A DNA stretch of 24,242 nucleotides from Oopsacas minuta (GCA_024704765.1 JAKMXF010000142.1:1-24242); one strand, 5' to 3'; shown: positions 3,441 to 23,728, counted from the first letter of the stretch. Notes: generated from the letters alone by a model not told the origin. A program made the numbers and translations.

Positions 3441-3544
3441 TAAGACAGAAAAGTGTAATAGAAAAATTCTAATTTGAACAAAAGAACAAGTGTGGGAAAT
3501 AGAAAGGAAAAATATGAATTAGACCGTGACCTACGTTATAATAA

Positions 3545-3697
3545 GGCCTGTTCACTAGTACGATTTTTTGGACCATGGATGTCGTTTAAGTCCATTAAAT
3601 TTTATTTCAAATAATCATGTATTTGATGTTATTCACCCAAATCGTGAACTTAAAAATTGTTCTTAGGCGATTTTNCAATTATATATATATTCAGGCC
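3545..3697. mobile_element. Short Harbinger-like MITE candidate
   Basis: TAA|GGCCTGTTCACTA...TTCAGGCC|AAA. A related terminus TAA|GGCCTGATCACTA lies at 10683. The TIR match is short and the TSD imperfect. Confidence 0.4.
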
Positions 3698-3707
3698 AAA
3701 AAGTGCA

Positions 3708-3821
3708 GTTTAAATCTTATCACAACTAATATATCTCCATTATTTCCTTAGAACTGACTTACCCAATCCCTGGTCCAAGTCCATTAATCAGCACCATTGC
3801 CTTAGTGTATAGAATGCTATG
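3708..3821 (-). mobile_element. 114-bp terminal inverted repeat of a P/Galileo-like element (terminus at 3821)
   Basis: Reverse complement of 23611-23724 with 2 mismatches. It ends ...TAGTGTATAGAATGCTATG, followed directly by CCCGTAC (3822-3828). It lies 381 bp upstream of the THAP ATG. Confidence 0.75.
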
Positions 3822-4019
3822 CCCGTACCATTGGGAGGGGATTAGGGATTTAGTTCACTACCTTATGGATCTGAGTACTCATTTGTACTCGTTATTAAGC
3901 TACCTAGGGGCGGGATGTGGACTTCATGGTGATTTTGTGTTTGGATGCACTTTTGTTGGAGTAATTATTAGAAAAGATTGCAGAATTGCGGATCGTTGGA
4001 TTATTTGTTTTTACATTTG

Positions 4020-4103
4020 TGACAACAGTCTAAAAATCGATTCTGACTTGTGACAACTAAGGATATTCTGACTAATGACAACTTCGAAATTCTGACTAGT
4101 GAA
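4020..4103. repeat. Arm of a small inverted-repeat element with about 3 degenerate 24-25 bp tandem units (ATTCTGACT..TGACAAC)
   Basis: 4065-4103 is the reverse complement of 23498-23536 (38/39 identical). Confidence 0.75.
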
Positions 4104-4206
4104 TGCGCTTCATTACTGAAAAATACATAATGATATGAACCATGGTATTTAGTACATATTAACACAGCACAAGGTATTAAAATAAAAATAGAGCTCTTCG
4201 CTTTCT

Positions 4207-4314
4207 AGGTCGCTTCACGACGTGAGTCACCTACGCGGAACTTAGTGCCTCAATTGCACTAATGATGAAACATCGAAAAAAGATTCAGAAATAATATCAT
4301 GGTCCAGATTGAGG
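4207..4314 (+). repeat. Dispersed repeat terminus shared with 13342-13401
   Basis: AGGT(C/A)GCTTCACGAC...GAG and GGTCCAGATT(G/A)AGG occur at both sites in the same order. Confidence 0.45.
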
Positions 4315-4851
4315 TGTGTCTATTTTTGGTACTCTAAGTTGACAATATAGTCAGTCCGCACCAATAGGATGTGTAAGTCGGGAATACGAGCCTCAAGTAT
4401 TAAGTAGATTCAGAAAATTTGCGATTTTTAAAATGAGTGCCATTTGTCTAAAATGATGATGTCATGGCATGCCATGTGCAAGTTAGACTGGTGATTCAAT
4501 TTTCAATCATCTCGAAAAATACAAAAGTCACTAACATATAAACTGTCAAATGTGTGAATTTTCGTCAAATAGGGCATGGCCCTGCCAACTCCATCTCCTG
4601 GTATACGTATTAACGAGAGTCTAATGTACAAGAATAGAATAAGAATACACAAGAAAAGAAAGATAATTTGATATACAAAAGAAATAATTACATATGATAA
4701 TTTCAATACATACAAATAGTTGCAGATTTGAATTGTTAGATAATCAAATATACAAACAAAATAGATTAATTTAATCATTAACAACTTGTGACAGAAGTGA
4801 TCTCTTTGAATAAGTAATATACTAGCATTAAGTGATAAGAATTAATGGAAT

Positions 4852-7800
4852 TTAGCGACAACCACAGGCAGCTACTTGCATATCCAGATACACCTTCATA
4901 ACATATCTTCTGGTAATAGGATCTGAATAGATTAAGGTTAGAGGATTGAGTTGTGTTGGAGTACAGCATACAGATGGTACAGAAGGCTCATTCAAATGAA
5001 ATAAAGAATTCTGTAAGATAGAATGATTGGTAGCATTGAAATGAGATAATAAGGGGATAGGACACATTCCATAGCAGTAATTAAGGTAGTAACCTTTTGG
5101 GTACAAAACCCAATTAGACCATCCAATTTCATTAAAACTAATATAAAGATTATGTTTCTGACATTGATCTGAGTCAGGAGGATAATCTGGAATGTCATTA
5201 GAGGAGCGTCTATTCCTAATAAAAACATCTAATCATCTCGCCATAATACAGTACAAATATGATTTAACAATTATTTATATTAATTAATTAAAAGTATCGT
5301 GTCAAATCACGGATAAGTTGGCAAGTATCCTAGAGACATGGATATTAATGAGAAATTATTTCACCCCTGGAGTGCACAAGAGTACTATAAATCAATAATA
5401 GTGGGGTTCCAATGCATCTATTACTTAGAGGCATTGTAAAGTTAAACTTTGGTTTAATCTTGAAGGTTAGTATCTAAATAACATTTTTGGACTGAGTAGA
5501 CAAACATCAGAAAGAATTGATGCACTCGGGGGTATGGACTTCGAGGGGACTAACTATTGCATGACTGTCCCTGTCATACAATAGTTTGTCCCCTCAAAGT
5601 AGGTACGACCGGACCATATATGGCAATGGATGGTCCCCATGTAGTGTAATGTACCCCAGAATAATCCCAATAATGAAGAATTAAGGGACTAATTCTCTAA
5701 AGAGATATATATAGGGCTTTCCCTGGTTGTGTTGTCCTCCAAGTTATATAATTGGAGTATATTATAACTTGATCTGGGTGTTATATGGGATATTATCTCA
5801 AATTATTTACTAATCAATCTTCTAATTATAGTATTTGTGGATTTCTATCTATTTGTATGTAACTGAGAGATGTTCAAGGGATTAACTTACATCTTTATTA
5901 TGAATTACATGTTTGTACTCCAGGCAAAATACTGAGTGAATTTAATAGAGTGACCCATTTGGCCTTGGTAGCCCTTGTAAAGCCTGCAATAAACATCGTG
6001 AAGAGCATTTAATATAATAAAAAGAGGGGAACCAAATTTTAAGGGCGAACCATCCGACCGGACCATTTAAAGCGGTGGACCAATAAAGCGTGACACTCCC
6101 CACCAAATGAAATATGTTACAGTATAGTGTATGAATAGTTGTATAAATTGGAAATACGACCTTTCGGGTAGAGGACGCTCTGAGCTACATTTATGCAAAT
6201 TTGAGCAAATCAAACGTATAAATAATTTTCGAGGTAAGATCATGCAAAGTGGCTGAGCCACAATGAATAGTGGCCTTGGACCACAGGACCCCAAAAGCCA
6301 CATTTTCGTATTTGGTTCAAATTGTCAGGATTAGTTCGTCTAGATGATGTGGACGTGGTTGGACACGTGTTTTTGAAGTGACAAACCTTTAACGTGTAGT
6401 AAACCCGTTTCGTGACATGCGTTATAGACCAGCTGATTACTTGAGGTTTATAGCACTCATTAATGTGTCATTGGTTAGTAAACTGATTTTTAGATGTGTT
6501 ACAAACCATAACAGTAGGTATCCATTGATTATTGACCAGATATATTAAGAAGCAGATACATGGATACATTGATGTGATCAAAGAATAAATTACCTAATTA
6601 GCACTTGAACGATTCAAATGGATAACGGGGCTCTGATTAACACACGGTCCTAAAAGTATGAATCTACTAGATTATCAAGTGCTAAATAAATAATCTAATT
6701 CAAACTTCAAAATTATCACTGAATAAGAAGAACCAAGAAACTGAATTGATCAGCTGATATATATATTGTGAAGTATTGTGGAATTATGGACCTTTAAGTG
6801 GCGGTTAGCCACTTAAAGGTCCATAATCCCAAAATACACGTACAATCAATATTTGCTTTGAGCCACGTACATATATCATCTATACAAACAAATTGTCAGG
6901 GTTGTATTCGCCTATGTATAGAATAGAAATATGTAGGTAGTTAAGATAAGAATACCGTTTTCTAGAAGATGGATCTTATATTGGAGATGCTCTTATAACC
7001 GTGTATTCTTATTAGCGTTACCAACAAGTATTAACATTATTTGTTTATTAAGAATTAAATCAAGAACCCTACTTTAGAGTGCCCCCTTCAGAAACCTTTA
7101 GGACAATCGGTCATTTTCCATAAACAGTGCTCAACAATTAATGTTTTACTTATATATCGCGGATATATATCTTTATATACTGGCACCTCTTGTCCACCTA
7201 AAAATTCACAATCCATGTCTCTAGATTCATGCTGTATTCAACAACGACTTCTATTATAGTAGCATTGTAATAATACAATACTTACCTGTGATGATGTTGC
7301 CAGTAAACACTTGAGGTTTGTTTATCTTGGGAATATAAAATAAGTTTCGCTGATATATCCAAAGTATATTCTTTGTCAGCCAAAATAAATAATGTTAATA
7401 ATCCGTCTCTTATTAACTTAGATAATTTCTTTAGAGGAATAAGATAATTCTTATTTGATAATAATTTCTTATCTGTAAAGAGATTAACGATATTTCCTTT
7501 AAAGACAGCTAGCACGGTTAGAGGATAGAGTTCAGTAATTTGATCTCCTAATATCTTAACATGAACATATCCAGTGATAAATTTATCACTCAGGAGGGAG
7601 ATATTAAAATTGTAAGTTTGAAGCAGATATCGATAACCAAAATCCCCTAAAAGTAAAGAAAAAGATCCGTATTATATATGTACAAAGCTAACTAGAAGAA
7701 CCCTTATTTTCACAACATGGGTATTTTCAGTTAACCGCAGCAATTGTCTGCTAACCGGTAGCAGGTCTACCGAATATCAACTAGTCTTGTAAAATCTGTG

Positions 7801-9093
7801 AGAATTTTAAACTATATAGTATTTAGAACAAATATAACCGAGAAAGAGGTACTCATAGGCTAAATTGGTCACTTTTACAAACGAAATCAGGAAACACAGA
7901 AACAAAAAATGAAAAAATCAGAAAAGATCGTAAAATGCAATATAAATAACATGTTTAGCCAATACAGAGCTATTTCTTGTAATCAATGAATTCAAACATA
8001 ACCTGCTAGGTTACAAGCCTCACCGGTTTTACATGACTACTTGCCATTAGGTAGAAAAACTTTGGTAATTTATTCAATTTTCCCATTTTGTGAGTTGAAT
8101 TCTATAAAATTGTGAAGTGATGCATATGGAATTCAGATTCGGACTCAGCATAGTTGATAGAACTGCTAGTAGCCCATAAACCAAGGGAAAAGGAAAAAGT
8201 CCATACCGAAGGAAGTCTGTCGGGGGGATGGCAGAAGGAGATCTGAATCTGATTCATAGGGCAGAACCAGCGGAGCAAGACGTTATCCACAAAGGGACAC
8301 CTCCAGGTTGGCATCGTAACACAATAGACTGGAAATAAGCAGCCTTATGGGCCTTTTCCTGTGACCCATCCCCTTGAAGTATCGTACAGTAGATGGGGTG
8401 ATGCATGGGCTACTACAATGCGGCTATACATGCTGACAAATTATAGTAAAATATAAGAATACAATTTTATAAATCCCATTAAAGAAAAAATAATCCTTCA
8501 ATGTTTGCGAATTGAACCTTTTTAGGGTAAAACGTCCTAGGAATCAATTTAGATTTATTAAAAGTTCAAACAGCCATGCTTCATCTAGTTTAGGCTCAAT
8601 TCAAAATATGACATCATAGTGTAGAAATTCATTAGTGAATTTTTAATGAATATCGCATTACTTACATTCCATTAATATATTATTTCCGGGAAACCAATAT
8701 GACCGTTGGACCCCCAAATGGTCATATTGGATACAAATACAGATTCTTAAAGGTATGTATAATGGAAACAATCAACAACAAACCTCTCAACGTAGAGATA
8801 GGATACAAGGTCTGTATAGAATTCGCGAATATTTTCTTATTTCCATAACCAAGCAAATTCATCGCCTTCATAGGATCCTGTTGAGCTCTATTAATCACCT
8901 TATTATATAGACGTACCATAAAACTTGGTAGTTGAGAGTCGTCTGGCCAGTTTGAATGGTTCTTGTCCATATTTGTACCGTCCATCACACCAAGTTTAGA
9001 AGCCAAAATAAGAGATACAGGAGATGTCATCAAAGTATTTGATGAAGTATAATGTAACAGATTCAAGAGACATAGAAACACAAGTATGAGCAT
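4852..9093 (-). CDS. TGF-beta superfamily ligand, BMP-like; 3 exons (9093-8784, 7646-7286, 5215-4852), 344 aa
   Basis: The exons join in frame through GT-AG introns (phases 1 and 2; 1035 nt total). Signal peptide MLILVFLCLLNLLHYTSS; prodomain motifs LPSFMVRLY and ANSIQTL; furin site RNRR/S. The mature domain has 7 conserved Cys: CQKHNLYISFNEIGWSNWVLYPKGYYLNYCYGMC...NATNHSILQ...CCTPTQLNPLTLIY...DMQVAACGCR. Confidence 0.93.
5572..6095. mobile_element. TGTCA...TGACA-terminated non-autonomous element (Ginger/TDD-like or solo LTR) in TGF-beta intron 2
   Basis: TGTCA start, GCGTGACA end, sub-terminal GGACC/GGTCC motifs. Flanks GTCCC/CTCCC (4/5 match). Similar end at 10426. Confidence 0.4.
6773..6837. 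repeat. 65-bp near-perfect palindrome (30-bp stem, 5-nt loop)
   Basis: ATTATGGACCTTTAAGTGGC-GGTTA-GCCACTTAAAGGTCCATAAT is a perfect 20-bp stem that extends to 30 bp with 2 mismatches. Confidence 0.9.
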
Positions 9094-9299
9094 AGTTGAA
9101 CTTATCCCAACTCACATATTAGTAAATATCTATAAATTGACATGAATACTCAAAAATTGTTGAATTAACACATTTTTCACATGAACAGTAAACCTTTTGA
9201 AGTACAGCACAAGCGGTTACTCTCGATTGTGCCGCATCATGAGGTTACCTGTAGCGAATAATGAATGTGCAGTATTACATCGTCAGTACAAACACGGTT

Positions 9300-9460
9300 T
9301 ATACGAATTTTCGAATAACACGAACAAATATTTACACAAAATCAGGTCCCTACTATGTTTTTCAATTGATATTGCTCCAGTTAATACTACGTACTCCGGA
9401 GAAGAAGTATAAAATTTCGAAGGCCCACTCGTGTACGCATTTAAACGAAGTTGGACTGTA
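9300..9460 (+). repeat. Diverged internal segment of the Harbinger-like MITE family
   Basis: ATACGAATTT...ACGAACAA...AATCAGGTCCCTAC...TTCAAT.GATATT.CTCC...ACTCCGGA is shared with 21073-21170. Confidence 0.55.
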
Positions 9461-9829
9461 TTTGAAGTGCAATGCTAACTTCCCAGTTAGTGACGGACGT
9501 CAAGGTTTTCTGATGACAGAAGGTTACTAAGATCATTGTTAGCCTGTTAGGAAAAAGTGTGCCTAGATTTCTTTTAGGAAGAAGAGTGATTTCGTAAAAT
9601 ATTTTTGAATAACTCCCAAAACATGGAAAGAGATATTGGCAAGGTAAGGCCAGGTTCGTTAGCTAATTCGATAAAAATGTCATATGCTCTGCCAGTAACT
9701 CTCCAAGATACACCCGTCAGGAACCAAGGGGTGTCTAAAATCTCCGTCCACGAGGCAGACCATGCTGGCCGAAAGATTTCAAATCCTCGTGTCAAATAGT
9801 GGAGATAAAATGAAACCATTAATTGATCT

Positions 9830-10426
9830 CCTCGGACCAATTTTGGTTGCCAAATTTGCTCTGGGAGACCAGTTTTAGCCAGCCAAATTGGTCCTGGGCA
9901 GGACAGTATTAACTCATTTGAGTTGGCAAAATCAACTCATTTTCTTGAATGAGTTGAAAGTTATCGAATGAATTAGTTGTATGAATTGATAACGCAAATC
10001 GGGACTGGAGGTATGAAAAGTAAGTACACTATCTGTGCCAAGAATGGTAAATCATCTAGTGAATTGATGTAACAATTAATTTTGTTTCCACCGTAACAGC
10101 ATTGCTTCAGTAATAATGTCTTAAACTTATTATTTCATATTTAACTCGTATCTTGGTTATAAAATGAGTTAGCAAAATCAAATCATTATTTAAAATGAGT
10201 TGAATGAGTTTGTAGCGGCAAAATGAATGAGTTGAACTATTTGGCTAAAGAAAAGTGAATAAGTTAGTAGACAAAAATGAGTATTTTTGCCAACTCAAAA
10301 TGAGTTGATACAGCCCTGATAGGAGGGGACCATTTTTGGCAACGAAAAGTGGTTCGAGGGAGCAAATTTGGCAGCCATGATTGTCCAGCCGGACCACTAT
10401 TGGCCCATACCAATTTTGGCGTGACA
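9830..10426. mobile_element. Inverted-repeat element with GGACC/GGTCC units (host of a nested MITE)
   Basis: 9830-9898 is a diverged reverse complement of about 10321-10395 (GG.TGCCAAATTTGCTC...CCA.TTTT...GCCAAA.TTGGTCC). The right end is GGCGTGACA; the left end is uncertain (possibly TGTCA at 9790). Confidence 0.5.
9899..10318. mobile_element. hAT-like MITE nested in the preceding element
   Basis: TIR CAGGACAGTATTAACTCATTTGAGTTGGCAAAA versus rc CAGGGCTGTATCAACTCATTTTGAGTTGGCAAAA, with internal AATGAGTT subrepeats. No clear TSD. Confidence 0.65.
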
Positions 10427-10751
10427 AGGCGGTTCTAATACGATACATAGTTTTCTATTGCAGAGGAATACAAATAACAATAAACATACATTTTCATTAT
10501 TCGTTATTTAGAAGTATTAGGCATAGTTTTTGACGAAAAGATTTCAAGAAAACCATCAAATAGAGATTGAAAGATGATATAATAACAAAATCGATGTGGT
10601 AATATAAAATCCAAGCTGTCAAGATAAAGCATATGAATTTTATTGAATAGTAGTTGATATAAGCATAGCCTACGAAAGATAAGGCCTGATCACTAAGTCC
10701 ATTTCACTGGACCAGTGATAAAAGGAAGTAGATATATTTTTACCAATACTA

Positions 10752-11207
10752 AAGTTCAGAGATCCCACATTTTCTATTCTGAAAGAAAAGATGCAAGCAG
10801 TTTCTGAGTTGATTCATTAAACATTTGAGAGAGAACTGAAAGGTAATGGGTACAACTTTATTCGAAATTTCTCCAGGAAATACCTGAGGTGTGTGAATCA
10901 TTGAAAGAGGAAGAACGGAATACAATATGCCTTCAAGCAGGTTTATCCCTGGTCGAACGTGAAAAGGAAATTGCAAACAAGATATCCTGGGTAAAGAATA
11001 TCAGCAGGCCAACAACAAAGGTACATTTTCTGCTCAACCATTTAGATGAGTTCTTAAACTAGTTAGCACTGGAAGGCAATACCCTATTGGTCTGGTTTTC
11101 TTTTCGGAGCAGGCGTTGGAAGTAGTCACAGTGATTTTACCAAATTTTCGAAGGAATATACAGGAAAAAGTAGTTTGCTAAGGGTAACCATAAAATATAA
11201 TGCATAA
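10752..11207 (+). pseudogene. Degraded DDE transposase C-terminus, Transib/Chapaev/RAG1-related
   Basis: Across frameshifts and stops: GYNFIRNFSRKYLRCVNH*, NISRPTTKVHFLLNHLDEFL (about 10997-11055) and GLVFFSEQALE + SSHSDFTKF (about 11089-11150, 1-nt deletion). Motif order and spacing resemble the T-K-x-H..H and SEQ..E..H region of this group. Recognised from memory, not by search. Confidence 0.5.
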
Positions 11208-11516
11208 ATAACATCAAAAAAGCAAGAAAGGAAAGTCTGTAATTGGAAAATATTAGTAGTGTAGAGTCTATAAACTCCTAATGTATAATAGTTGCATAAT
11301 GAATTCGGAATTAGCGTGGAATAATTATATAATCAGGAATAGCGAATAAGTAATCCAATGCGTAAAATATAATCTATATTTAGTATGTATATAGGACTTA
11401 TATCCGTTACAATGTATCTGTGGTTTCTATTCAAAATCAATTATTATTGTATAATAATACCAATGCATAAAGTGAATATTTTAATGCGCTACAAGTTCAG
11501 TCTAATATAGTGTAAT

Positions 11517-12156
11517 CAGTGGCGGACACTTGACGAAATGTTTGGGGGGTGAAATTAGTTGGGACTCATCACACTTTCAATATTCTTAGTCAGTGCCCCA
11601 ATCAATCTTCTTATTGCCAGCGGCTGATTTTGTGTTTACATGTATCTTTTGTATTTTATATTAGACGTATCGTATATCATATGAAAAGGACCCAACCTTT
11701 TCAAAGTTCTCGCCATCTCGAAGACCTTACATGTGGGTACCGCAACGGTGGAAAGGAGTTTTAGTGGATGAATCGCATATTAAGCTGGGCTCGAAGCAGC
11801 TTAGATTTTCGTTGGCCAGTGACTTTATGCTGCTTTCGATGAACAAAGACATTTTAAAAAGGCTAAATTGGACAAAGTGCTTGATCGTTGGGTGAATCAA
11901 AAGTCCGAGTTGCATCATTAAACTTTTTTTCCTTTATTAAGGCTTTTGAACACTTGAGGATTAGTAGTGTCTTTTCTCAATTTCGCTATATAATTATGCT
12001 ATTTTGGTGTTGTTGTTTCTATTACAATTTGTACTAACTCCTTCCACTTTTAAAGTAAAAGATTCCTTGTGTTTCCACTTATTTACTCAAATTTCTTTAA
12101 ACTTTATTCTTTCGAAATTATTGGGGGGTGGCCACCCCCCCTAGTGTCCGTCACTG
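11517..12156 (+). mobile_element. hAT deletion derivative, 640 bp, retaining a hATC dimerisation-domain remnant
   Basis: TIR CAGTGGCGGACACT / AGTGTCCGTCACTG. 8-bp TSD AGTGTAAT/GGTGTAAT (7/8). Internal KVLAISKTLHVGTATVERSFSG* followed by NRILSWARSSL and LASDFMLLSMNKDIL at about 11703-11880. Confidence 0.88.
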
Positions 12157-12694
12157 GGTGTAATATCATTGTATATAGCTAAAGAATATCTAAATATAAA
12201 AACATATGTTGCACAACATTTTTCGATAAAATTATTGCAAGTACCAGCGGCTTCCAAATCTCGATAAATCGAAAAAATTTATTATTGCTCGTCTAACTTG
12301 AATGGGAATTAGCATGAAGACTTTATTATAATGGTTATTCTAGAATCTAGAGCTATATTATATCCCGGTATTGAAAATTTTGAGTAGTGTTTTAGGCTTT
12401 GATAAACTAAATTATTACTAAGTCATTCACTTGTATCAACACATTTACAATGATCTACACATTTTGATATGAATTCTTGTATTACTAAATCTCACGGCAT
12501 AGTATATTTTTGGAAAATATAGAGATAGATTAGACTTCTAGATAACTCTCGAGTTACTTGTAACATAGTGATTCGTAGGCATAATTTGTGATTCATTTGG
12601 GGTAAGATGATAACCCTTTGCAAATAGGTATATTCAATAGAGAATCCTATTTGTTGAAAACATAATTGTAGGAGAAATTAAATTTTGTTTTAGA

Positions 12695-13195
12695 ATGGAT
12701 TTGAATGTGAACTTAGTTACAGGACGGTATTTACAATTGAAGCTGAATCAGCCATCTTCCCATGAGTTAATCCTTGAGAAGATATCTGATTTGACCAAGA
12801 TACCTCCCAATAAGCAAATGCTCGTGAAAAATGGGAAAGTGATTAAAGAAATCAACCCAATAGTGATCGAGAGCCCAGGAGATATCTGGCTCATTTCTAA
12901 AGTGAGGGCCGGCGTGATAGTACATGTAAAACTATTTAGTGGGGTAATCCTCTCTGTAGAAGTTGAATTGGACGAGGATACCATTTTCAATGTAAAGGAA
13001 AAGATAGCTGAGAAGCAAGATATTGAAACAAGTAAGCAAGCTCTATTCTTCAAAGATAGATCACTGGATGACGATGAGCTAAAATTATCTGCTGCTGGAA
13101 TTCAAAAGGGTGATGTACTGAATTTAATGTTAAAAACTGATGACAGCAGTGTAAGAGTTGAAGAAAAATCTTCCAGTTGTTGCTGTTTCCTATAA
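12695..13195 (+). CDS. Tandem di-ubiquitin-like protein with C-terminal CaaX (CCCFL), 166 aa
   Basis: Domain 1 (aa 1-73) keeps ubiquitin register at G10, K29, I30, I36, P37, P38, Q41, L43, G47 and K48, and ends KVRAG. Domain 2 has VK..G...EVE...DTIFNVKEKI..K..I...Q.L.F...L.D...LS...IQKG..L.L.L. The tail is SSSCCCFL*. A pyrimidine tract and AG just before the ATG suggest a 5'UTR intron. Confidence 0.88.
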   Translation: MDLNVNLVTGRYLQLKLNQPSSHELILEKISDLTKIPPNKQMLVKNGKVIKEINPIVIESPGDIWLISKVRAGVIVHVKLFSGVILSVEVELDEDTIFNVKEKIAEKQDIETSKQALFFKDRSLDDDELKLSAAGIQKGDVLNLMLKTDDSSVRVEEKSSSCCCFL

Positions 13196-14290
13196 ACTAT
13201 CGGGTCTCGAATTTGATTTATGTTGTCATTATAACCACAGCTACTATGCGATATTTTGTATTACATTTGTTAGCTCTTGTTCCTTTACTATGTCTTCAAA
13301 TTAAATATTACTAATTATTACTATATAGTGCGCTTGTTGTAAGGTAGCTTCACGACTGAGGTATATGCAAAATCAGAAGCGCGAACAGGTCCAGATTAAG
13401 GTAAGTGGGACCATATACCGTATGTGTAGGTAGGCTCTCACTTCAATTTATATTAACTAACTTAATAATATCAATTCAGGGCATCTGCATCAATCATGTC
13501 TGTAGAACCGGCACTTTTAGATACCTACCAAGTAGCGTGCCGTTAAGGGCCGTGTAATTGACTGCATTACTAATACTTACTTGCGCCAAATGAATTCCTC
13601 GGATTCAGGTCTGCGCCACCTAGCATCAAACACTGGCGGCCCCACTGCCGCCAAGCACCTAGATCAGTGGTTTAAAAAGTACACAGAGCATCCGCGTTAG
13701 GTACATGGTCTTAGACACATATTAGTTACATAATGAATATGTATTAGATAGATTAGTCATTACTGTTAAAATCTCTTTAGGTACATACTGTAATGACTGT
13801 GTATTTTGAGTATTGTTGCACAGTTCGTATTGTATGAGAGGTGGACTATCTGCTCTATGGAATGGTAGTTTCCCTACTCAGGTTACTATAATAAGGATGA
13901 AATTTGGCAGACTATGGTTTATGGTAGAGATGAAAAAGTACAAATTCTAGAAAGGGACGAATAAATGCTAACTTCGATAAAAACTATCCTCAAACATAAC
14001 ACAGGCCAACATTTTCTTGGCTGATAAGTTTAGACTATTTCTAGGGTATATCGGGGTCATTGAGTTCCAAAATGGCACTAGTTCTGGTCAATTGGCTCTA
14101 CTTTTCGTGATATTGTATAATTATGTTTTTCAGCATCCGTGAATCTGTGTTCACTGATACCATATAGTATGTATGTATTACCTTATAACTAGAATTGAAT
14201 GGACGTAATAAGCAGATAATTTGAGATATAATATGATCTGAATACTTANCATGAATAAATTTGGGTGTCATCAGGTATATAATGCATATT

Positions 14291-14377
14291 TAAAGCTTCC
14301 TCGGATTTAGCGACAAATCGGATATAACGACCTTTTTTGCCTGTCCAAACGAGTGTCGTTAAATCCAATGTTTACTG
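14291..14377. mobile_element. Very short pogo/Tigger-like MITE candidate
   Basis: CCTCGGATTTAGCGACA versus rc CATTGGATTTAACGACA; the right end is ...TTTACTG|TA; the left end is degenerate. Confidence 0.4.
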
Positions 14378-14383
14378 TACTCA

Positions 14384-14529
14384 AGTATGCTGAGTCTAAA
14401 TATTGTAAACGACATCAATATTATTTAATCTCAATTGTTGTTTGTCTGTTTTATTGTCCGTTGAATACCTCAAGGAGCAATGCGATGAGTTCATCGCGAA
14501 GCGACGAGCCAAAGGCTTGTATATTCTAA
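14384..14529 (+). repeat. Dispersed repeat (both family segments contiguous), ending in a hairpin plus CTAA
   Basis: Matches 564-645, then 171-227 (rc) and 18968-19024. Hairpin ACGAGCC-AAA-GGCTTGT is followed by ATATTCTAA. Confidence 0.65.
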
Positions 14530-15051
14530 ATGAGAAGCTTGAAAACGCGAAATTCGGATTCAGCGTACATTGTTACGCCATTGTAGTCGTTAAGAGCAAG
14601 TTTCTACCATTATTTCAAGATGTTAACTATTGTTTACTTGATAAAAACAACAATTTATTTACATATGATTAATTCAAAAGTGTGAAAATCGGATACAACA
14701 TATTCGATAGATTTAGTCAAGTTATATTGAATTCTGTTTAGTAACTTGCTAAACACGAGTAATGCAAAGTTATGACATCTCAGGGCTTGGGTATTCGAAT
14801 TGTAAACAACATTCCATAAATCCTTTCCTTGACAACAGACAAACAGACAACACTGGAAATTTAATAATATAGATTCAACACTTTTTCCAATACTTTTCTT
14901 TTATACACTAAACTAGGAAAACACAATGAGTAAATATTACAAATAATTGTAGAAACATAGATAATCTAACCAAAAAATAAAATCATACCATTACACCTTA
15001 TATAAATTTGGAGACACTTAGGAATCCAAGTATAGTACTTGTACAAGCTTA

Positions 15052-18000
15052 CTACATCATCAAACACTTCATCCCGGTTGTAGCCTGATTTTCTCCGTAG
15101 TACTTATTTTGGTACTCCTCCATATCCTTGATATAAGAAATAGGAGGCCATCTATTATTAATCACGAATGTAGCATGTTCTTCATCCAAACGCTGAACAT
15201 CTCCCTTAGACTCAAATACAGAATAATTAGTTGATATAAAGTGCAAACACCAACCAACAAGCTGTTTTGCATTATAGGCTTGTGCAACTCTTAGCAACTC
15301 TGGGAGATCAACGATTGATCCGGCAATACGCTCAGTGGTCTCTCTCTCTACATATTTTGTAAGCGCAAGTTCGCATCTAGCTACAAGGCGAGGTAAACAA
15401 TATTGATTAGCTGCCGACATTATTCCAACTAAATCAACTGATCCATCCACAACAGTAGTCATGGAATATATAAAATGGAGTAATTCACGAAATACTTGAA
15501 CTTCGATTTCTGTAATTTCGATCACATTAGATTGAGATTTGGCTAAATTTCCAATGAGCAAAGCTCTCAGTACTTCACTCCTTGCAACAATAACACATCG
15601 ATGAGCAGGAATTAGTTCTTCGCCTACTTTGAATTGCATATCAGAGAGTGTGGATTTACCAACAAATAATTCACTTGCAACCTGTAAAATAATAAAGGAA
15701 ATAAAATCAAATATTTTACTGAAAGAGCAAAGGCAGTTAGTGCACACACTCCATTATATCAAACTAATATCAATCTTTGCATTATTGCATAACTTTTGGG
15801 AGGCCTGCGTGGTCAAATACAACTCTAGTTAGCAATGGAAAGGATAAGTGTTCACACAGCTTCTCAAATCTATATTCAACTTAGCAGTGGCATACCCAGT
15901 ACGGCTGATGCGGTGTTTCTGTAAAACTAATCGCTCTGTTATACCATCTTTATCTCTTCGAAAATATACAATTCGTTAATAATTTCATTATTTTTATATA
16001 ATATAATGAATAGACAGTTTGTAAGTTTGATTCCAGCGGTACTAAGTTAACCAATGCAGCGAAGCAGGACCAATTACCAAACTGTTGCGCCGCTGTAGGA
16101 CAACAATTGAATACTGAAATTTATCGCCGTACAACTTTTCGAATGGATATGCCGCGCTTGTAGGAGGTGTAATATAGCAATTTTCGCATGCCTTGATATG
16201 TATTCCTACAGGTGGAACAATATTCGTGAACAGAGATACCAATCCTAGCGAAAATATGTTCCATTTTCGATTGATATATTTTAGATGGATTCGACGTCGA
16301 TTGCATTTCTTTGAAAATAATTTGTATATAGAAAGTAAAACTTTATTCCTCTAGAAATATATTAATATTAGGCTTGCTTATTGAATCAATTTTCGCTGGA
16401 CCAGGGATAAAAGGAAGTGGAATTGGTGGATTTATTTTACACATCTCTGGGATGGGAAATATAATATTCGCTGATAATAAGAAACTTTCACAATTTCATC
16501 CGAAAAATGTAATATTGATATGTAACAATTTCCAAAATTATTTGTTCATTTTATATTCATAAAACAACAAAAAATTTATAAATGATAAATTAAGAATGAC
16601 AAATTCGTAATTCATCATATGTAAATTTATTGTTGTTTTTATGAATATAAGGATATCTCTTACGAATGTGACGTAATCATGAATATGCATATAACTAGAT
16701 TCAACTAAAAGTATGGGTAAGTTATTAATACTGGTAAGAACCATAGAATCGAATTTAAGTGTTTACAATCGAATCTAAGGAAGAAAGAATTCGGAAATAT
16801 TTTGTAGAGGAAATACACAAACCTGTCCAGCAATTTCATTCATATAAGTAGAGATGCTAGGGTTAAGATCATCAGATTGATCCTCAATGTTTTGGCAAAA
16901 CTGAGACATTTTGGGTAATGAGAAGAAATCTGCAGCCTTTATAGTTTCGGGAATCATATCGTCTTGGTCCAAGATAAATACTGTACCAGTGTACAAAAAT
17001 TCTATTACCCTACGTAAGCCCAAATCTGAGAATATCTCACAATCTACCTCAAGTACTGGATATTCCTTACCATCAATTTCCTCAACTTTGAAGCTTATAA
17101 ATCCACTAACCCTACCTTCATTTATCATAGAAGCAGAGACACGTTGTTGTCCTTGACTCTCTGTATCGAGAAGTAATTTGGGTTTACCAACACGAAGTAA
17201 CTATGAAAAATAGACAATAAATATTATATTTAATAATGCTGAGAGCAATTAAACAATGCGATCGTAATCGTAATCAGAATTTTAATCAGTGGCGGATTTA
17301 GAGGAGGGGGCAATTGTCCTCCCCACCCCTTTTCCAGGAATAGGTGCCAAAACATATTTTGAAATTATGTGGTTTTGTTTACGATTATATATTCAATATA
17401 CCCGCATACATATAGTGTTATACACTATTGGCTGGTACTAGAATACAATAGACTCCGGTTAATAACGACCAAAATCTGGAATAAATGAGTTTCTTCTATG
17501 CGAGTCAACTGTATATATTCACTATCGTATAAAATGACAATTATAGCATACAGTAGAACCTCTATAAGTGGGGGAGGTTAGGCCGGCGAATCTTCAAATA
17601 ACCCCCACATTTCCCATTTATAATTTCTAATGTAAATGTCCTTAAGCTTAGTTTTTTTGAGTCAATATGCATAACCACTTCCTCCAACGACTGTTTTCCA
17701 ATGCTATTTGATTATAAGAATATGTCCAAAGATGTTGGATGAATTTTCTCCTGAGAAACCCAAAAAATTCAATTCATCATAGCGATAAATACGTGTATTC
17801 CTTCCAAATTTCACACAAGAATTGATTATTCAATAAAATTTGTCTTATAATTCCCCACTTAAAGATGTAATTTCAATGGTGTGAGGCATGATTTATCTAA
17901 ATAATGCCCCATTCCACATTCCCCGCTTATAGAGGTTCGTTTCTATGGAAATGAGTGAAGGTGGGCCAAAACCCCACCTATAGAGGTTTCACTGTATATT

Positions 18001-21000
18001 AGAGCTAAATTGTCCTGGAAAATGAGTGAACATAGCACTAGATGGATTTTTGGGTGTTTAGGAATGATATAAATTCTGGGGAAGTTTACCCTCCCAGACC
18101 TCGGATTATACAATTACTCGCTAAGCTCGCTTCTCCTTCCTTCCACAAATCCTGGATCTGCCACAGTTTTAATCATTGAGTAGCGTCGTAATCGTTCAAA
18201 AATCTAAATAGGAATTGACCCCAACTCTGATTCAGAAATTAACAAGCGGTCATATATCAGTAAACAGATTCACTGGTAAGATTGGAAAATTAAATAATAA
18301 ATTTACCTGTCTAAAGAAATGGCTATTACAGGCAAGGATAATTCTGTTGAGATAGTGGTAGTGATCCAGGCGTTTAATGATGAAATCTGAGGCTGTAGGA
18401 GATTCTAGCAGATACTTCATATCATGACCATATGTTATTAGAGGAATATTTATCCAAGGTGCTTTTCCTGCAGGTGGCATATCAGGAGGAGGAGGAATTG
18501 CAGCTTTGGCCGTTTCGTCAGTTTGTCGCCGCCAGAAAAAAGAAAACTTCCTACAAACATTAGGAATAAATGTATAATCAATATTATTAAATCAAAATTG
18601 TTGTTTGCTTGCCCGTTGTCAAGGAAAGGAATTAAGGTATGCAATTTTAAAATTGTCGCATAACTATATATTTATTGTGTTTATTAAGGAAGTAAATATA
18701 ATTCAATAAAACTTCACTAAATATATCGAATTTGCGGAATCCGATTTTCACACTTTGGGATTAATCATATGTAAATTTATTGTTGCTTTTATGAATATAA
18801 AGTAAACAAATTAGCCAAATCCCAAAATATACGTACAGCCTTGTTCTAAACGTCTGCCCAGGGGTAAGTAAGTACGCTGAATGCGAATTTCGCATTTTCA
18901 AGTTTCTCATATGTAATTTTATTGTTGTTGTTATGAATACAAAGTAAACAAACTTCAAAATTTAGGTTACCTCGAGGCGCAATGCGCCGAGTTCATCGCG
19001 AGGGACGAGCCAAAGGCTCGTGTATAATAAAACAAAGATTATATTGCAGCTCATGTTTGGAGGGAGCCACACGGAAGCAAGGTTTGTGATTTCCGAATGC
19101 ATGCATGTCCAAAGTATCATGGGAAAAATGTTCCTAAAGAAGTAACAATTTATACAAGGATAAATTAAAATGTGACATGGACACATGCCCAAGAATTCAC
19201 GATATTTAAAGATGAGCAAGATCAAAAGATAAAGAGTTCAAGAAGACATTTCAAGTGTAGTGCCTAGGAAGTAATACAATTCTGCACCCCATTTGGTAAA
19301 TACTCTTCAATGATGCGAGTGCAAGTCTTCAATAGGCTTAAAGACCTGAGACAGCGAATTGTGGGTCAATCGCGCTCATTCCCGCTACGCTCGTTCGCGC
19401 GAATAATAATTAAGGAGGTAAAGGGGACTACATGAAATTACTTTAAAACTAATGCTAACGCCAACTGCCCAAATTCGAGCTGTTGATGACTTGCTTGGAA
19501 GTTTAGTCGAGCTAATGACAACGCTAAATTCGACCTAACGCACCCCTTATTAGAATAATGGATTTTGTTTAATTAGATCAGAAAAGTCTCAATTCGGCAG
19601 ATCCTAATCATGGCTTACTTTTACACGATTGTGTATCCCACTGAGTATGCGAAAAATAGAAGCCTGATTTAGTTTATAATTTAAATATAAACCAATGCTC
19701 TTACCATTTGCCAAATATAATTTCAAGGGGCTTTTGTATATGAGGAATTCATTGAGACTGCTTAGCAAGTACTCACGGCCGCCCTTCATGTGGTTTAGGC
19801 TCTTCTTAACGATGACGTCACCATTTCAAAGAATTTAATCATTTGGAAGGATATTTTATTTAAAATAGATTTTATTTAAAATAGATTTTATATATTTTTA
19901 TAAAGTAATCTGAATGAATTATTTTACTATTTTTCTAAAAAAATAGACAAACACTCAGAACAATGTTTGAGCAAACGAGAGATTCATTATAGAGAATGTT
20001 GGGTATAACTAAACTGTAAATAACTTAAGAAAATGATCAAACCTTGCTGAAGCTGAAGAAGCCTTTTTCTGATGTCCATCAATGCCACATTGAATTGCTT
20101 TGTCAAAAACTGTACGTAAATTGGATTGTGTGAGAGAACTACACTCTAAATGACCTGATGCACCAGTCTTCTTGATAACTTCATCAGCATAGGTTGAAGA
20201 AACAAATCTAAAAAATATCAAATCACTGTTTGTGCCTAACTAATTTTAAATTATCTCAAGATATATCTGACCCAATCTATGCTTTCTAGTATATGAGCTA
20301 GATCTACTGTCTACCTCCAAAAGGACCCCACTCTTGGAAAATACTCCATCATAATTGTGGTACAGTACTAAGGGTTGGAAATCTAGACATATGTATATAT
20401 TTCTGGATGACTATTTCGCTATTAACAAATTATGAAAATTATCAGATTCGTAATTACGCACTCAATTATATCGCACATCGTCCATGCCATTAGGGGATTT
20501 CCCAATAGGAGCTGCACTAAAAATAGGTATACGTAGAGAGGTTCTGAATGGCCTGGGTAATAACGAACGGAATTCCGAATTTCGCAATTTATAGTTTTTA
20601 TAATATAATGAATTTTACTAGTACAGTGGAACCTGAAAATTACTACCACAGAGGGAGGGAAGATAAAATATGGCCGTAATTTCTGATATTAATGAGCTGT
20701 AGTGTAGTACAGTTTTTTGCAATAGAAAAACCCCATACTCTCATTCGAAAAGGTGACTTTCATTAATCCGAAAAATGACCTTTCCTCGAAGATAGAAAAG
20801 CTGAGCTATATGTAAGTTATTTGATTAATAATAGTGTCAATTAGTAGTTGAACGGGACTATAAAATATGGTCGTTAAGCGGGTTCAAATTGGATACCTTG
20901 AGCTCCGAGCTCATCCCGAAACTACGTACGAGCCCAAAGCTAATATAAGGCCATGTAAAATATATTACTTGTTTCTCAGCCATTTTTTTCTGCGAAATAA

Positions 21001-22033
21001 GGGCGGGGGGCGGCATTTTATTTTTATATTTTGCTTAGCGTAATTTTACTAATTTATTAAAATTATCTCGTTAATACGAATTTCTGATAAGACGAACAAT
21101 ATTCGTACATAATCAGGTCCCTACAACCGTACTTCAATGGATATTACTCCGGGTTTGTGAACTCCGGAATGGTGAATAAATTTTAACCGTACGATACGTT
21201 GGTGTTCGTATTAAGCTTACACTGGATATGGAAAAACTAATATTCACTTCCTCTCTATAATCTGAATTATTGTACAATTTAAATAATAATGACAAAAATT
21301 TAGTGCACACGGGTCCCGACTAAAAACGGTATGTCCCTCCCCATAAACCCGGACTGAGCCTGTCCAAACTCAGAACCTGCTTTTAAGTGTCCTGACGAAA
21401 TTATGATGCCATTCAGACCTTTTTGGATTTTCGAAAAATCACATGGTTAGCCACACTGCTCAGCGACCTAGCTAGCGAAGGGCGCTAGTGTTAAATAATT
21501 AGCTTGTTTCGAAGACGCTCATCTGCGAATATATGTATTAAATAAAGATATGTATTAAAATAAAAAAAATTACCGAGGAGGGAGATTAAATGGGGCGGGC
21601 GGGGATGATAAACAAGTATATTATTTTATATGGCCTAATTTATAATAGTAACTCACTTCTCAGGTTGAGCTGTTCGTAAATCACTCTTTAGTCCGATTAC
21701 TAGATACGGAGTGTGAGGGCAGTGATGAGTTATCTCAGGGATCCACTTTGCGGTTATATTTTCGAAACTATCTTTACTAGAGACATCATAACAGAGTAGA
21801 AAAATGTCAGTCTGTGGATAAGAGAGAGGTCTCAAGCGATCATAGTCTTCTTGTCCCGCTGTATCCCAAAGTCCAACATTATACGGTTTACCATTATACA
21901 TAATATTGGCAGAATAGTTATCGAACACCGTTGGTACGTAATCTCCAGGGAATGCATTTGTTGTGTATGAAATTAGGAGACAAGATTTCCCAACAGCTCC
22001 ATCACCAGCAACGAGAAGTTTCAAATTCTGCAT
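15052..22033 (-). CDS. RhoBTB: RhoBTB protein, RacA-type: Rac-like GTPase + Pro-rich linker + 2 BTB + CaaX; 5 exons (22033-21657, 20207-20043, 18550-18307, 17200-16823, 15681-15052), 597 aa
   Basis: All junctions are GT-AG and phase-compatible (2,2,0,0; 1794 nt). GTPase motifs [42 protein letters not shown] and ECSSL. Linker [21 protein letters not shown]1 ...VIEFLYTG. Junction [14 protein letters not shown]|[20 protein letters not shown]2 [19 protein letters not shown]...[10 protein letters not shown]. RhoBTB tail [16 protein letters not shown]...NNRWPPISY; ends GMKCLMM*. Confidence 0.92.
16616..16650 (+). repeat. 35-45 bp motif repeated at 18766-18810 and 18908-18952
   Basis: CATATGTAAATTTATTGTTG(T/C)TTTTATGAATATAA. 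The latter two copies are a local direct repeat 142 bp apart. Confidence 0.7.
17287..18166. mobile_element. hAT-like MITE in RhoBTB intron 3, containing a nested pogo-like MITE
   Basis: TIR CAGTGGCGGAT / ATCTGCCACAG (2 mismatches). Direct repeat TTTTAAT abuts both ends. Sub-terminal G/C runs. Confidence 0.7.
17551..17994. mobile_element. pogo/Tigger-like (Tc1/mariner superfamily) MITE, 444 bp
   Basis: TA|CAGTAGAACCTCTATAAGTGGG...CCCACCTATAGAGGTTTCACTG|TA, with TA target duplication. Confidence 0.85.
18968..19024 (+). repeat. Dispersed repeat with GC hairpin (copy 3)
   Basis: TACCTCGAGGCGCAATGCGCCGAGTTCATCGCGAGGGACGAGCCAAAGGCTCGT, with a perfect ACGAGCC/GGCTCGT stem. Confidence 0.65.
20949..21635. 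mobile_element. PIF/Harbinger-like MITE, 687 bp, in RhoBTB intron 1
   Basis: TAA|GGCCATGTAAAATATATTACTTGTTTCTCA...TGATAAACAAGTATATTATTTTATATGGCC|TAA. TIR family shared with 1471-1784. Confidence 0.8.
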
Positions 22034-22351
22034 ACGTAATGATTGTATTTGAAATAAAAAGCTTAATCGAAAATATAATAAAATCTTGATTTTATTACTT
22101 AATATATGCCAAATATTGAAGAACAAATATAGATTGAAACGAAAATAACTAAAGCTAAATATAGATATATATTTAGAGTTTTTAATAGAACTAAATAATT
22201 ATAAAAAAAGATTTCCTAATAATTCTATCCAATACTAATACGTAAGTTATCAGGAATCAATCCTAAATGTATAGAAAATACTCTAATTATAGTTTGACAC
22301 ATAAATTAATTCAGGGGAATTTGTAATATTAATTAATGCTATGATGTACGC

Positions 22352-22460
22352 CAGTGCTTCTAAACCTGAGGTCTGCGACCCATAGGGGGCCCGTGGCCCC
22401 CATAATTGCATAATTGACTAGAGTGGGTCCGCGGGTGAAAAAAGGCTGAGAAATACTCTG
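22352..22460. mobile_element. Short hAT (Charlie/MER5-like) MITE upstream of RhoBTB
   Basis: CAGTGCTTCTAAACCT...GGGTCCGCG...AAAAGGCTGAGAAATACTCTG. Flanks ATGTACGC/GCGTACTC (5/8, degraded TSD). Confidence 0.55.
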
Positions 22461-23497
22461 GCGTACTCAATAAGTTTCACGTTGTTGGTGTTGCGCAGTT
22501 AATGTCGCACTACATGCTTCATTCCCCGCCATCTATCCCACTTATGGGTAGAGGTGTAGCATGTAGCTAGGCCCGCACAAAGGGTGCTGTAAAGGAGTGG
22601 CACATAAGCTCCATGTTTGGGTTCCTGGGGGATCAGGACCCCCCAGTTTAGTGGTAAAGACCGTCTTTTTGCGAAATTTACATAGAGGTAGCACCAATTT
22701 CGCATGGTGGACCCCAGGTCTGATTTTATTTCCTAAAACTTACATATGCCACACCCAAGCTGCGCCTTTGCTTATGGGCCACCCGTGCGCCAGTAGTCTT
22801 TAATTATCGTAGATTTATAATAAATACTATCGTGCAAGAAATATCAAGAAAATTGAGGGACAGGGGAGGTTGATCAAAAACAATCTAGAAATTTGATTCG
22901 TCATAAGTCAGAAACCACGTGAGCGATTGTCCTGAAATTTTGACAGAAGTGAAGACATGATGGTACCCAGCTCTACAATAAATTTCGGATAAATTGGTAG
23001 ATGTTGATACCATTTTACTAATTTCAGCTTACAATGGTCTGAAAAAGTTCAGCTGATGCGCACCATCTTGGCTAGATCTCTGTCACTTATACACATTATA
23101 TTTTCCTTGTTTCCTTCTGATGGATTTCTACAATTAACTTTCAAACTGGAATTCAAGTTCAATTATATTCTATTATCCAGGAAGGATACCAAACCTGACC
23201 ACATTTTTATGACAACATTCGGGATATGAAATAACCCGATATAACAGTAACCAAGTTTTTTAATACAAGAATTAACCAATTGGTTTGGATTTGAACATTT
23301 TATAATAAAAGCGGGTTATTCTATTATGTGGTATGAAAATAATCTGGATCTACTGATATATGGATTTGTCTAAAAAATATAACCTAGTTAAAGTGTATGT
23401 CAATCGTATTATTCTAACCAATGGATTTAAAATTGAATAGAGTTTGTTAGAAAACGGCTTCTACTGAATGTCAATTAATAGATTGCTGAGGGGAAGT

Positions 23498-23536
23498 TTC
23501 GCTAGTCAGAATTTCGAAGTTGTCATTAGTCAGAAT
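23498..23536. repeat. Opposite arm of the small inverted-repeat element at 4065-4103
   Basis: TTCGCTAGTCAGAATTTCGAAGTTGTCATTAGTCAGAAT, 38/39 identical to rc(4065-4103). Confidence 0.75.
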
Positions 23537-23610
23537 CTACTTTTCCGACATGTCGCGTGGCAAATGAGGCCAGGCAAAAACCTTTTATTCGATTTATTAT
23601 AAACCCGTAC

Positions 23611-23724
23611 CATAGCATTCTATACACTAAGGCAATGGTGCTGATTAATGGACTTGGACCAGGGATTGGGTAAGTCAGTTCTAAGGAAATAATGGAGATA
23701 TATTAGTTGCGATAAAATTTAAAC
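23611..23724 (+). mobile_element. 114-bp terminal inverted repeat of the P/Galileo-like element (terminus at 23611), interrupted by mariner
   Basis: Begins CATAGCATTCTATACACTAAGG and is preceded directly by CCCGTAC (23604-23610). 112/114 identical to rc(3708-3821). Confidence 0.75.
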
Positions 23725-23728
23725 GGTA

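Follow-up and report, generated by a model that had tools for sequence, protein, structure and literature searches.

Two halves of one nested transposon insertion and the probable permutation of a scaffold in the glass sponge Oopsacas minuta

The window analysed here is the entire 24,242-bp scaffold C142 of the glass sponge Oopsacas minuta, in which BMP-like, di-ubiquitin-like (di-UBL) and RhoBTB-like genes lie between two halves of a single transposon insertion, arranged so that the left half follows the right one at a distance of 19.8 kb. The question raised by this locus is whether such an inside-out order belongs to the genome or to the assembly. The original prediction treated it as genomic; the swapped order is present on the record as described, but as a property of the genome it could not be upheld, as it runs through two single-N joins, at positions 3675 and 14249. 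With moderate confidence, the order is probably a scaffolding permutation and not a genome rearrangement. The features discussed below are listed in Table 1.

Table 1 Features of scaffold C142 in the order of the record.
Feature	Position	Strand	Remarks
Piece 1	1-3674		begins in repeat-A-like fragment (9-67), stops 150 nt into young 3.6-kb element
RING-finger gene, last exon (zf-C3HC4_3)	929-1285	+	PF13920, E 9e-11
P-element-like transposon, old, internally deleted	1417-3524	-	80-86% identity to other copies
E36 terminal inverted repeat (young 3.6-kb element)	3506-3674	+	96-99% identity to other copies
Single N, unclosed join	3675		left: inner end of E36 repeat; right: internal foldback position
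Foldback right end, 146 nt	3676-3821	+	family homology reaches N 3675
Target-site duplication CCCGTAC, copy 1	3822-3828		after first arm
MITE (401 bp), right part	3829-4111	+	
MITE's own 7-bp duplication, right copy ATTACTG	4112-4118		
BMP-like gene	4852-9093	-	TGF_beta exon 4852-5106; N-terminal exon 8722-9093
di-UBL gene, single exon, 166 aa	12695-13195	+	
Repeat A, high-copy, 256 nt	13996-14251		913 candidate copies; ends at N 14249
Single N, unclosed join of pieces 2 and 3	14249		repeat A / repeat B boundary
Repeat B fragment, 130 nt, young	14250-14380		97-99% identity to other copies
RhoBTB-like gene	15052-22126	-	Ras/Rho exon 21653-22126; BTB exons 16775-17128 and 15052-15747
MITE's own 7-bp duplication, left copy ATTGCTG	23482-23488		
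MITE (401 bp), left part	23489-23603	+	
Target-site duplication CCCGTAC, copy 2	23604-23610		before second arm
Foldback left end, 118 nt	23611-23728	+	100% identity to copy L002
Mariner, first 516 nt of 1.33 kb	23727-24242	+	inserted at TA within foldback; scaffold ends inside mariner

The two predicted 114-nt inverted arms (3708-3821 and 23611-23724) are indeed present with 98% complementarity, and they form the opposite ends of a DNA transposon of about 1.1 kb that is non-coding and almost a palindrome. This foldback family comprises at least 40 copies possessing CATAG...CTATG ends and 7-bp target duplications, and when copy L002 is aligned to its reverse complement the two agree at 95.7% over 1103 nt. 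Matching 7-mers (GTTGATC, GCTCAAT, GATCTTC, GCTAGAC, GTTTACA, CATTAGT) flank most of the complete copies examined, one further copy having a near match (TTTCGGT / ATTCGGT) and two listed copies no clean match. In the window both arms adjoin CCCGTAC, as had been noticed, and this 7/7 match has a chance probability of about 1e-4 at fixed positions, given the base composition. The arms differ at 4 of 118 positions. Within single copies the terminal 118 nt show 0-4 differences (n = 8), a range that includes this value, whereas different copies are 11 apart on average and 6 of 112 such pairs have four or fewer, which puts the value in the low tail of that distribution.

Outside the target duplication the two junctions continue into complementary parts of a MITE belonging to a family of at least 140 candidate copies. 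The 39-bp inverted pair reported at 4065-4103 and 23498-23536 was recovered as part of a 45-nt repeat (4059-4103 / 23498-23542, 93%). Joining 23490-23610 to 3829-4108 did rebuild one element, yielding a single colinear alignment across the junction to intact MITEs of about 400 bp (85.6% over 411 nt for L057, 84% for L058 and 89% for L056), each of which contains one CCCGTAC-like 7-mer. The MITE has a 7-bp duplication of its own, as is typical of the family (TCCTGGG, ATCTATA and ACCAAA[A/T] in three intact copies), and the two copies of it in the window match at 6 of 7 positions (chance about 2e-3), which ties the two halves to one MITE copy. Because of this duplication, the 7/7 match of the foldback duplication and the similarity of the arms, positions 23489 and 4111 must once have been contiguous, and both junctions derive from one foldback insertion into one MITE copy, just as the original prediction had it.

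The scaffold ends inside a third element. All copies of this mariner are preceded by TA and extend over 1.33 kb between 25-nt inverted repeats, and the 371-aa frame of copy L035 matches PF01359 above the cut-off (E 6e-8) and PF17906 below it, so that the TA target, the short inverted repeats and the Transposase_1 and Mos1-type HTH domains place the element in the Tc1/mariner superfamily. The possibility that the arms are themselves the termini of a long-repeat mariner was rejected, as the mariner does not begin until 23727, at a TA within the foldback. The order of arrival is thus nested: the MITE first, then the Galileo-like foldback, then the mariner. The use of nested insertions as markers of contiguity is standard logic, and this locus offers two 7-bp layers for it, those of the MITE and the foldback, followed by the TA of the mariner.

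By its structure and 7-bp duplications the foldback most resembles Galileo, an element of the P superfamily from Drosophila. Both have long inverted arms forming a near palindrome and 7-bp target duplications, arms that are near-identical within a copy and several per cent apart between copies, and non-coding derivatives of about 1 kb residing in transposon-crowded regions (PMC2775673). Of the features that define P/Galileo membership, the 7-bp target-site duplication (7-8 bp in the group) and long foldback arms more alike within than between copies were both found, and the target CCCGTAC shares its GTAC end with the Galileo consensus GTAGTAC (PMC2775673). Unlike Galileo, the foldback resides in a glass sponge. 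Elements of this group are mobilised by a P-type transposase with a THAP domain, whose autonomous copy has the same termini. To the family with termini CATAGCATTC no transposase source was linked; P-like remnants with THAP and TNP-like RNaseH similarity occur in the window at 1417-3524 (ORFs 3048-3440 and 2647-2886, both Pfam matches being under the curated cut-offs).

The assembly, 61.46 Mb in 365 scaffolds, was made with SPAdes, SSPACE (-k 5), Pilon and GapFiller, the number of scaffolds being reduced from 936 to 365. Scaffold C142 contains only the two Ns named above, and we take a single N to be the mark of an unclosed SSPACE/GapFiller join; a limited look at the literature found no published statement that either program puts a single N at such joins. 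The scaffold is a small super-scaffold of three repeat-bounded pieces (1-3674, 3676-14248 and 14250-24242), all of which terminate within high-copy transposons, and both scaffold ends lie in high-copy young repeats too. The N at 3675 interrupts the foldback internally. On its other side the E36 repeat, with its outer end at about 3506-3525, stops at its inner end, and elsewhere E36 repeats form four pairs of a plus copy followed by a minus copy, three spaced at 3.6 kb and one at 6.7 kb, so the body of the element should run on into the gap. These two transposon-internal sequences cannot be naturally contiguous, and the N conceals at least the remainder of E36. The N at 14249 is intergenic, lies between the two MITE/foldback junctions and is spanned by no gene; the repeats A and B that meet there are unrelated and high-copy, and another MITE-like repeat begins at 14377, directly after the repeat B fragment. 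A circular over-run of the contig was also considered and rejected, since the mariner frame at 24242 is not continued at base 1 and the scaffold ends share no direct repeat; the right end, in the mariner, does not connect to the left end.

Placing piece 3 before piece 2 with their present orientations kept would turn the locus into an ordinary nested insertion. What the sequence shows is that a foldback of about 1.1 kb inserted once into the 401-bp MITE, which had the 5′ side of RhoBTB as one neighbour and the 3′ side of the BMP-like gene as the other, and that the mariner landed later inside the foldback. Read from left to right, the restored locus would begin with the left MITE duplication and the left part of the MITE; CCCGTAC and the left end of the foldback would come next, then the mariner and the unassembled remainder of the foldback (about 1.6 kb altogether), and the series would close with the right end of the foldback, the second CCCGTAC, the right part of the MITE and the right MITE duplication. 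Reversed ends would be absent from such a locus. Both the palindrome and the young repeats may have broken the assembly, after which the scaffolder would have ordered the pieces wrongly or ambiguously.

Several lines of evidence argue for this reading, under which the swapped order is most likely not genomic: C142 is a whole scaffold with unclosed single-N joins, the N at 3675 is flanked by transposon interiors that are not naturally contiguous, the N at 14249 falls exactly at the end of repeat A and the start of repeat B where no gene crosses, and positions 23489 and 4111 were once contiguous. Other copies of the palindromic foldback family in the same assembly also have gaps: L010 contains a single N, and L026/L029 a run of 213 Ns. 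The locus shares with permuted or collapsed draft assemblies its small orphan scaffold, the repeats at every boundary, the single-N joins and the palindromic element, and the exchange of two pieces gives a canonical structure.

Further support comes from related sponges and from the search for copies. PF22591 ORFs, and not RhoBTB, come after di-UBL in three related sponge assemblies; homologous exon ORFs of RhoBTB were found in the relatives as well. The matching PF22591, 565-aa and CRCB genes of O. minuta are on scaffold C336, where these conserved di-UBL neighbours sit inside the scaffold and not at its end, so the adjacency across the N at 14249 differs from the one kept in the relatives. 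The check proposed originally, a search for a second copy of the three-gene block, revealed none of any part of 4110-23490 in the assembly, and no independent contigs encoding exactly the same di-UBL protein are on record. Exons of the spliced genes were searched individually and not as joined models.

Against the permutation stands the fact that scaffolders require read pairs for a join, and the links between pieces 2 and 3 and between pieces 1 and 2 were made by the scaffolder though the pieces are perhaps not neighbours. The repeats flanking each N differ in family, so that mislinking through a shared repeat is not obviously applicable. Synteny is conserved only in part, the kinase next to BMP in one relative being on a third scaffold in O. 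minuta. A collapsed tandem duplication would also give an identical scaffold.

That the swapped order is real, with the 20-kb block tandemly repeated, circular or relocated and bracketed by facing fractured foldback ends, must be regarded as rather doubtful. One form of it, itself only tentatively entertained, is the main rival of the permutation: in this form a cyclic unit of RhoBTB, MITE/foldback, BMP and di-UBL was tandemly duplicated at least twice and collapsed in assembly, or exists as an extrachromosomal circle. The novel junction would then be at or near the N at 14249, and the unit would include the whole foldback with both flanks, which implies an origin by unequal exchange or a replication-based mechanism and not by end transposition. 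This accounts for both the link across 14249 and the ancestral contiguity of the MITE with no false join at 14249, and under a collapsed duplication the contigs should break exactly where the novel junction lies, with a non-ancestral adjacency there, as the synteny shows; moreover, young near-identical transposons crowd the region and could mediate unequal exchange. Its difficulties are that no part of the block has a second copy, leaving everything to an unseen collapse, that a pair of copies would leave piece 2 with two equally supported right neighbours, a case which the ratio test of the scaffolder should refuse, and that the joining of piece 1 to the left of piece 2 is left unexplained.

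It is improbable that the order is real in a single copy, produced by a three-break swap, by duplication and deletions, or by excision and re-entry of a circle, with facing foldback ends on which reversed-ends transposition might act, as the original prediction proposed. Such an explanation accepts both scaffold joins at face value, Galileo-type elements do cause rearrangements in Drosophila (PMC2775673), and the record shows the reversed-ends geometry known from maize Ac/Ds (PMC1592236, PMC3744419), with about 20 kb of genes between two facing termini of one element family. This much of the claim stands, whereas reversed-ends transposition as the origin of the arrangement is not supported. 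In maize the reversed ends belong to two separate insertions (PMC1592236, PMC3744419), while the flanks in C142 are two halves of one target, an outcome that the maize reaction does not yield, and the C142 arrangement, unlike that of maize, hinges on unclosed scaffold joins. Tandem duplications made by reversed ends have a second element with the original duplication on one side and a new flank that does not match on the other (PMC3744419); in C142 that flank is the matching MITE half with the same 7-mer, so reversed-ends transposition did not create the arrangement, and the segment 4110-23490 is not present twice in the assembly. The documented Galileo rearrangements, in turn, are inversions with exchanged, reverse-complement duplications (PMC2775673), while the C142 7-mers are direct and identical. 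A single-copy order would also require three breakpoints or several steps, the N at 3675 is demonstrably no clean junction, the foldback family has no linked transposase source, and the products that such an event would leave were not found.

Equally unlikely is a large composite with two foldback ends that contained piece 1 (the RING exon and transposon debris) and moved into the MITE as a unit. In such a composite the foldback left end and the mariner would be followed by unknown sequence and then by piece 1, E36 and the foldback right end; only the 14249 join would be wrong, and the scaffold would be a circular permutation of host, composite and host. The join of pieces 1 and 2 and the 7-bp duplication outside both ends are retained in this case, and 4 differences in 118 arm positions fit two sister copies too; however, nothing places piece 1 between foldback ends, the N at 3675 hides at least the rest of E36, the two scaffold ends are unconnected, and the eight complete foldback copies examined, at 1.09-1.11 kb, are all without cargo.

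Two independent foldback insertions at the same 7-mer in two MITE copies, or two MITE-plus-foldback composites with partner ends off the record, would draw on the multi-copy nature of both families but are already close to refuted, given that the MITE's own duplication matches between the halves, that no examined foldback copy lies in this MITE, the targets being unrelated 7-mers, and that the nearest other MITEs (91% and 86% identical) are uninterrupted, no second copy interrupted at CCCGTAC having been found, by which the scenario of many such composites, named originally as a refuting one, was rejected as well.

If the order is an artefact, scaffold C142 needs re-ordering, the di-UBL-RhoBTB and RING-BMP neighbourhoods are unfit for use in synteny, and like caution applies to other single-N joins beside palindromic transposons in this assembly. 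If it is real, the locus would record that three developmental or signalling genes were duplicated or relocated in an event that can be dated, though one of a known kind; it would offer a natural example, in an early-branching animal, of a gene block duplicated or moved, datable by the split target site, and a standing substrate for more end-to-end transposition. Within the window no RNA genes or tRNA-derived SINEs were detected. The locus adds to the evidence that P/Galileo-like foldbacks making 7-bp duplications are abundant in a sponge and have been active there recently.

In the window, 3708-3821 and 23611-23724 form an inverted repeat of 114 nt that is 98% complementary, with CCCGTAC directly after the first arm and directly before the second, as in the original prediction; the 39-bp inverted pair reported with it also exists and belongs to a 45-nt inverted repeat (4059-4103 and 23498-23542). 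When the arm was used as a query against its own genome, at least 40 matches were found, many of them paired about 1.1 kb apart. Eight complete copies of this foldback element are 1091-1106 nt long, start with CATAGCATTC and finish with GAATGCTATG, and most of them are bordered by matching 7-mers, e.g. GTTGATC, GCTCAAT, GATCTTC and GCTAGAC. A complete copy can be aligned along its full length with its reverse complement (95.7%), which makes the family a non-coding DNA transposon of nearly palindromic structure.

The outer 118 nt of the foldback arms show 0-4 differences within a copy versus a mean of 11 between copies, and private variants are common to both arms of the same copy (L002:1501-2603, L005, L013, L015, L020, L021, L025 and L028), including a deletion in L028 and the CACATATC variant in L020; the arms have therefore been homogenised within copies and have diverged between them. 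In Galileo, which belongs to the P superfamily and is foldback-like, the duplication is 7 bp long (consensus GTAGTAC), and the arms of one copy are more than 99% alike, those of different copies about 7% apart (PMC2775673). The sponge family has in common with it the foldback shape, the 7-bp duplications and the arms homogenised within a copy.

The sequences inside the two arms, 23490-23610 and 3822-4110, each have many genomic matches and overlap by exactly 7 nt in intact copies of a MITE; rejoined, the halves give one continuous alignment to these intact copies of about 400 nt, each of which contains CCCGTAC once. Three intact copies show the MITE's own 7-bp duplications, TCCTGGG, ATCTATA and ACCAAA[A/T]; its outer flanks in the window, ATTGCTG (23482-23488) and ATTACTG (4112-4118), match at 6/7 positions. 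With 4/118 differences between them, the foldback arms of the window fit an origin from one copy. Since the MITE halves, the 7-bp duplications and the arm similarity agree, bases 23489 and 4111 were formerly contiguous and both junctions derive from one insertion, so that the single event first proposed from CCCGTAC and the arms holds and is extended by the MITE duplication and the arm comparison. Many genome-wide copies of a MITE-plus-TIR composite were ruled out: among the other copies examined, no foldback element lies inside the same MITE, and the nearest other MITE copies (91% and 86% identical) are both uninterrupted.

The window represents the entire scaffold C142 of an assembly of 61,460,524 bases in 365 scaffolds, and its only Ns are those at 3675 and 14249. 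The assembly started from a SPAdes hybrid run; SSPACE (-k 5 -a 0.7 -n 15) linked 936 scaffolds, and 365 super-scaffolds were left after treatment with Pilon and GapFiller. The sequencing libraries contained DNA from different adults, and the mean Illumina depth of the genome is 186x (PMC10280926). To the right of N 3675 the foldback homology reaches the N, the element being cut at an internal position, and to the left lies the inner end of the 150-nt terminal repeat of E36, a young 3.6-kb element. Because the outer end of this repeat is at about 3506-3525 and its inner end at the N, the E36 body is expected inside the gap, the orientation being based on four plus-then-minus pairs of repeats, three of them 3.6 kb and one 6.7 kb apart. 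The sequences flanking N 3675 cannot be natural neighbours, so that either sequence is missing at this N or the join is false. N 14249 marks the exact boundary between the end of a 256-nt repeat (repeat A, 913 candidate copies) and the start of a 130-nt fragment of another (repeat B), with 97-99% identity to further copies of repeat B. With both Ns at such boundaries, C142 consists of three pieces, 1-3674, 3676-14248 and 14250-24242, and high-copy transposons are found at every piece boundary and at both scaffold ends. We take the single Ns to be unclosed SSPACE/GapFiller joins. The genes were identified from exon ORFs searched one at a time, unjoined; none crosses N 3675 or N 14249, and gene structure thus cannot vouch for the joins.

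Features of scaffold C142
Feature	Coordinates	Strand	Remarks
RING exon	929-1285	+	piece 1
Decayed P-like element (THAP, TNP-like RNaseH)	1417-3524	-	piece 1
Foldback terminal 146 nt	3676-3821		sole right-end remnant in window
BMP-like gene	4852-9093	-	piece 2
Di-ubiquitin-like gene (di-UBL)	12695-13195	+	piece 2
RhoBTB (Ras, BTB, BTB)	15052-22126	-	piece 3
Foldback terminal 118 nt	23611-23728		sole left-end remnant in window
Mariner	starts 23727		TA target, 25-nt inverted repeats, 1.33 kb full length

Three related ENA assemblies contain homologues of di-UBL with 60-70% identity on long contigs. Each of these homologues is followed downstream by an ORF with PF22591 (eIF3a PCI/TPR-like) and has no RhoBTB within 10 kb; in one assembly BMP exons lie just upstream. 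Orthologues of RhoBTB (P0009-P0014) are present in the related assemblies ERZ25071281, ERZ25072730 and ERZ25072740. Since the relatives have PF22591, not RhoBTB, after di-UBL, the di-UBL/RhoBTB adjacency across N 14249 is not the conserved one. In O. minuta, scaffold C336 has within 152.7-159 kb the top PF22591 match, the 565-aa ORF that comes next and the CRCB gene, and a kinase that is a neighbour of BMP in one relative lies on C39. Synteny shows where the non-ancestral junction is located, namely at N 14249, and fits equally a false join and a real duplication with its new junction there.

A permutation introduced during scaffolding is the most likely reading of the swapped order, with roughly an even chance of being correct. 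If pieces 2 and 3 were exchanged without turning, a fully canonical nested insertion would be restored, in which about 1.6 kb, comprising the mariner remainder and the inner palindrome, would be left unassembled. The weakness of this reading is that the read links behind the joins are unexplained. These links are accounted for if at least two tandem copies of the block RhoBTB - MITE/foldback - BMP - di-UBL were collapsed by the assembler, or if the block forms a circle, but such an explanation depends on an unseen collapse, no second copy of the gene block having been found in the assembly, and leaves the join of piece 1 unexplained, so we consider it possible though doubtful. A composite with two foldback ends that carries piece 1 needs just one false join; it is improbable. 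A real single-copy swap with the reversed-ends geometry is likewise given little probability, and the inside-out structure originally predicted stands as the order on record and is, at the genome level, more likely an ordering artefact. Reversed-ends transposition as its origin was not borne out: a duplication of that origin carries, next to its second element, a new flank that does not match (PMC3744419), whereas C142 has at this position the matching half of the MITE and an identical 7-mer. Independent insertions at the two junctions are nearly excluded.

The foldback element, the MITE and the other elements belong to known kinds, of which they are new members. Other foldback copies also contain assembly gaps (a single N at L010:1782 and a 213-N gap at L026:1180-1392 and L029:1726-1938), and the family causes breaks in this assembly quite generally. 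The MITE family (23489-23603 plus 3829-4111; L056-L074) includes at least 140 candidate copies of about 400 nt; its members have GGGG...CCCC termini, contain short repeats, both inverted and direct, and are bordered by target duplications of 7 bp. As the duplication length is 7 bp in both families, one transposase may move the MITE and the foldback element.

Copies of E36 (3506-3674 in the window), whose 150-nt terminal repeats are 96-99% identical between copies, are also found at C314:93896-97522, C11:43949-47592 and C177:278892-282531, and their right ends have about 17 extra outer bases in common with the window copy. In a further MITE-like family, two inverted copies (14377-14875 and 18575-18967) flank the 3' half of RhoBTB and a fragment lies in piece 1 (485-633), which explains the inverted repeats I2 and I3 of 137 nt and 79 nt.

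The di-UBL protein of 166 aa ends in CCCFL and, as equal length and 49-70% identity are kept in several related assemblies (P0002-P0008), is the product of a real, conserved hexactinellid gene. The PF22591 exon is present in at least 10 copies clustered on C336 (57000-153200), many with stop codons, and also on C48, C317, C358 and C270; the cluster resembles a tandem expansion specific to this lineage, or else an array of pseudogenes.

The C142 record stops 516 nt into the mariner, whose family carries Transposase_1 and Mos1-type HTH domains and has at least 215 candidate copies in its own genome with 94-96% identity. The copy at L035:1644-2756 retains an open 371-aa frame with both domains, and the family may still be active.
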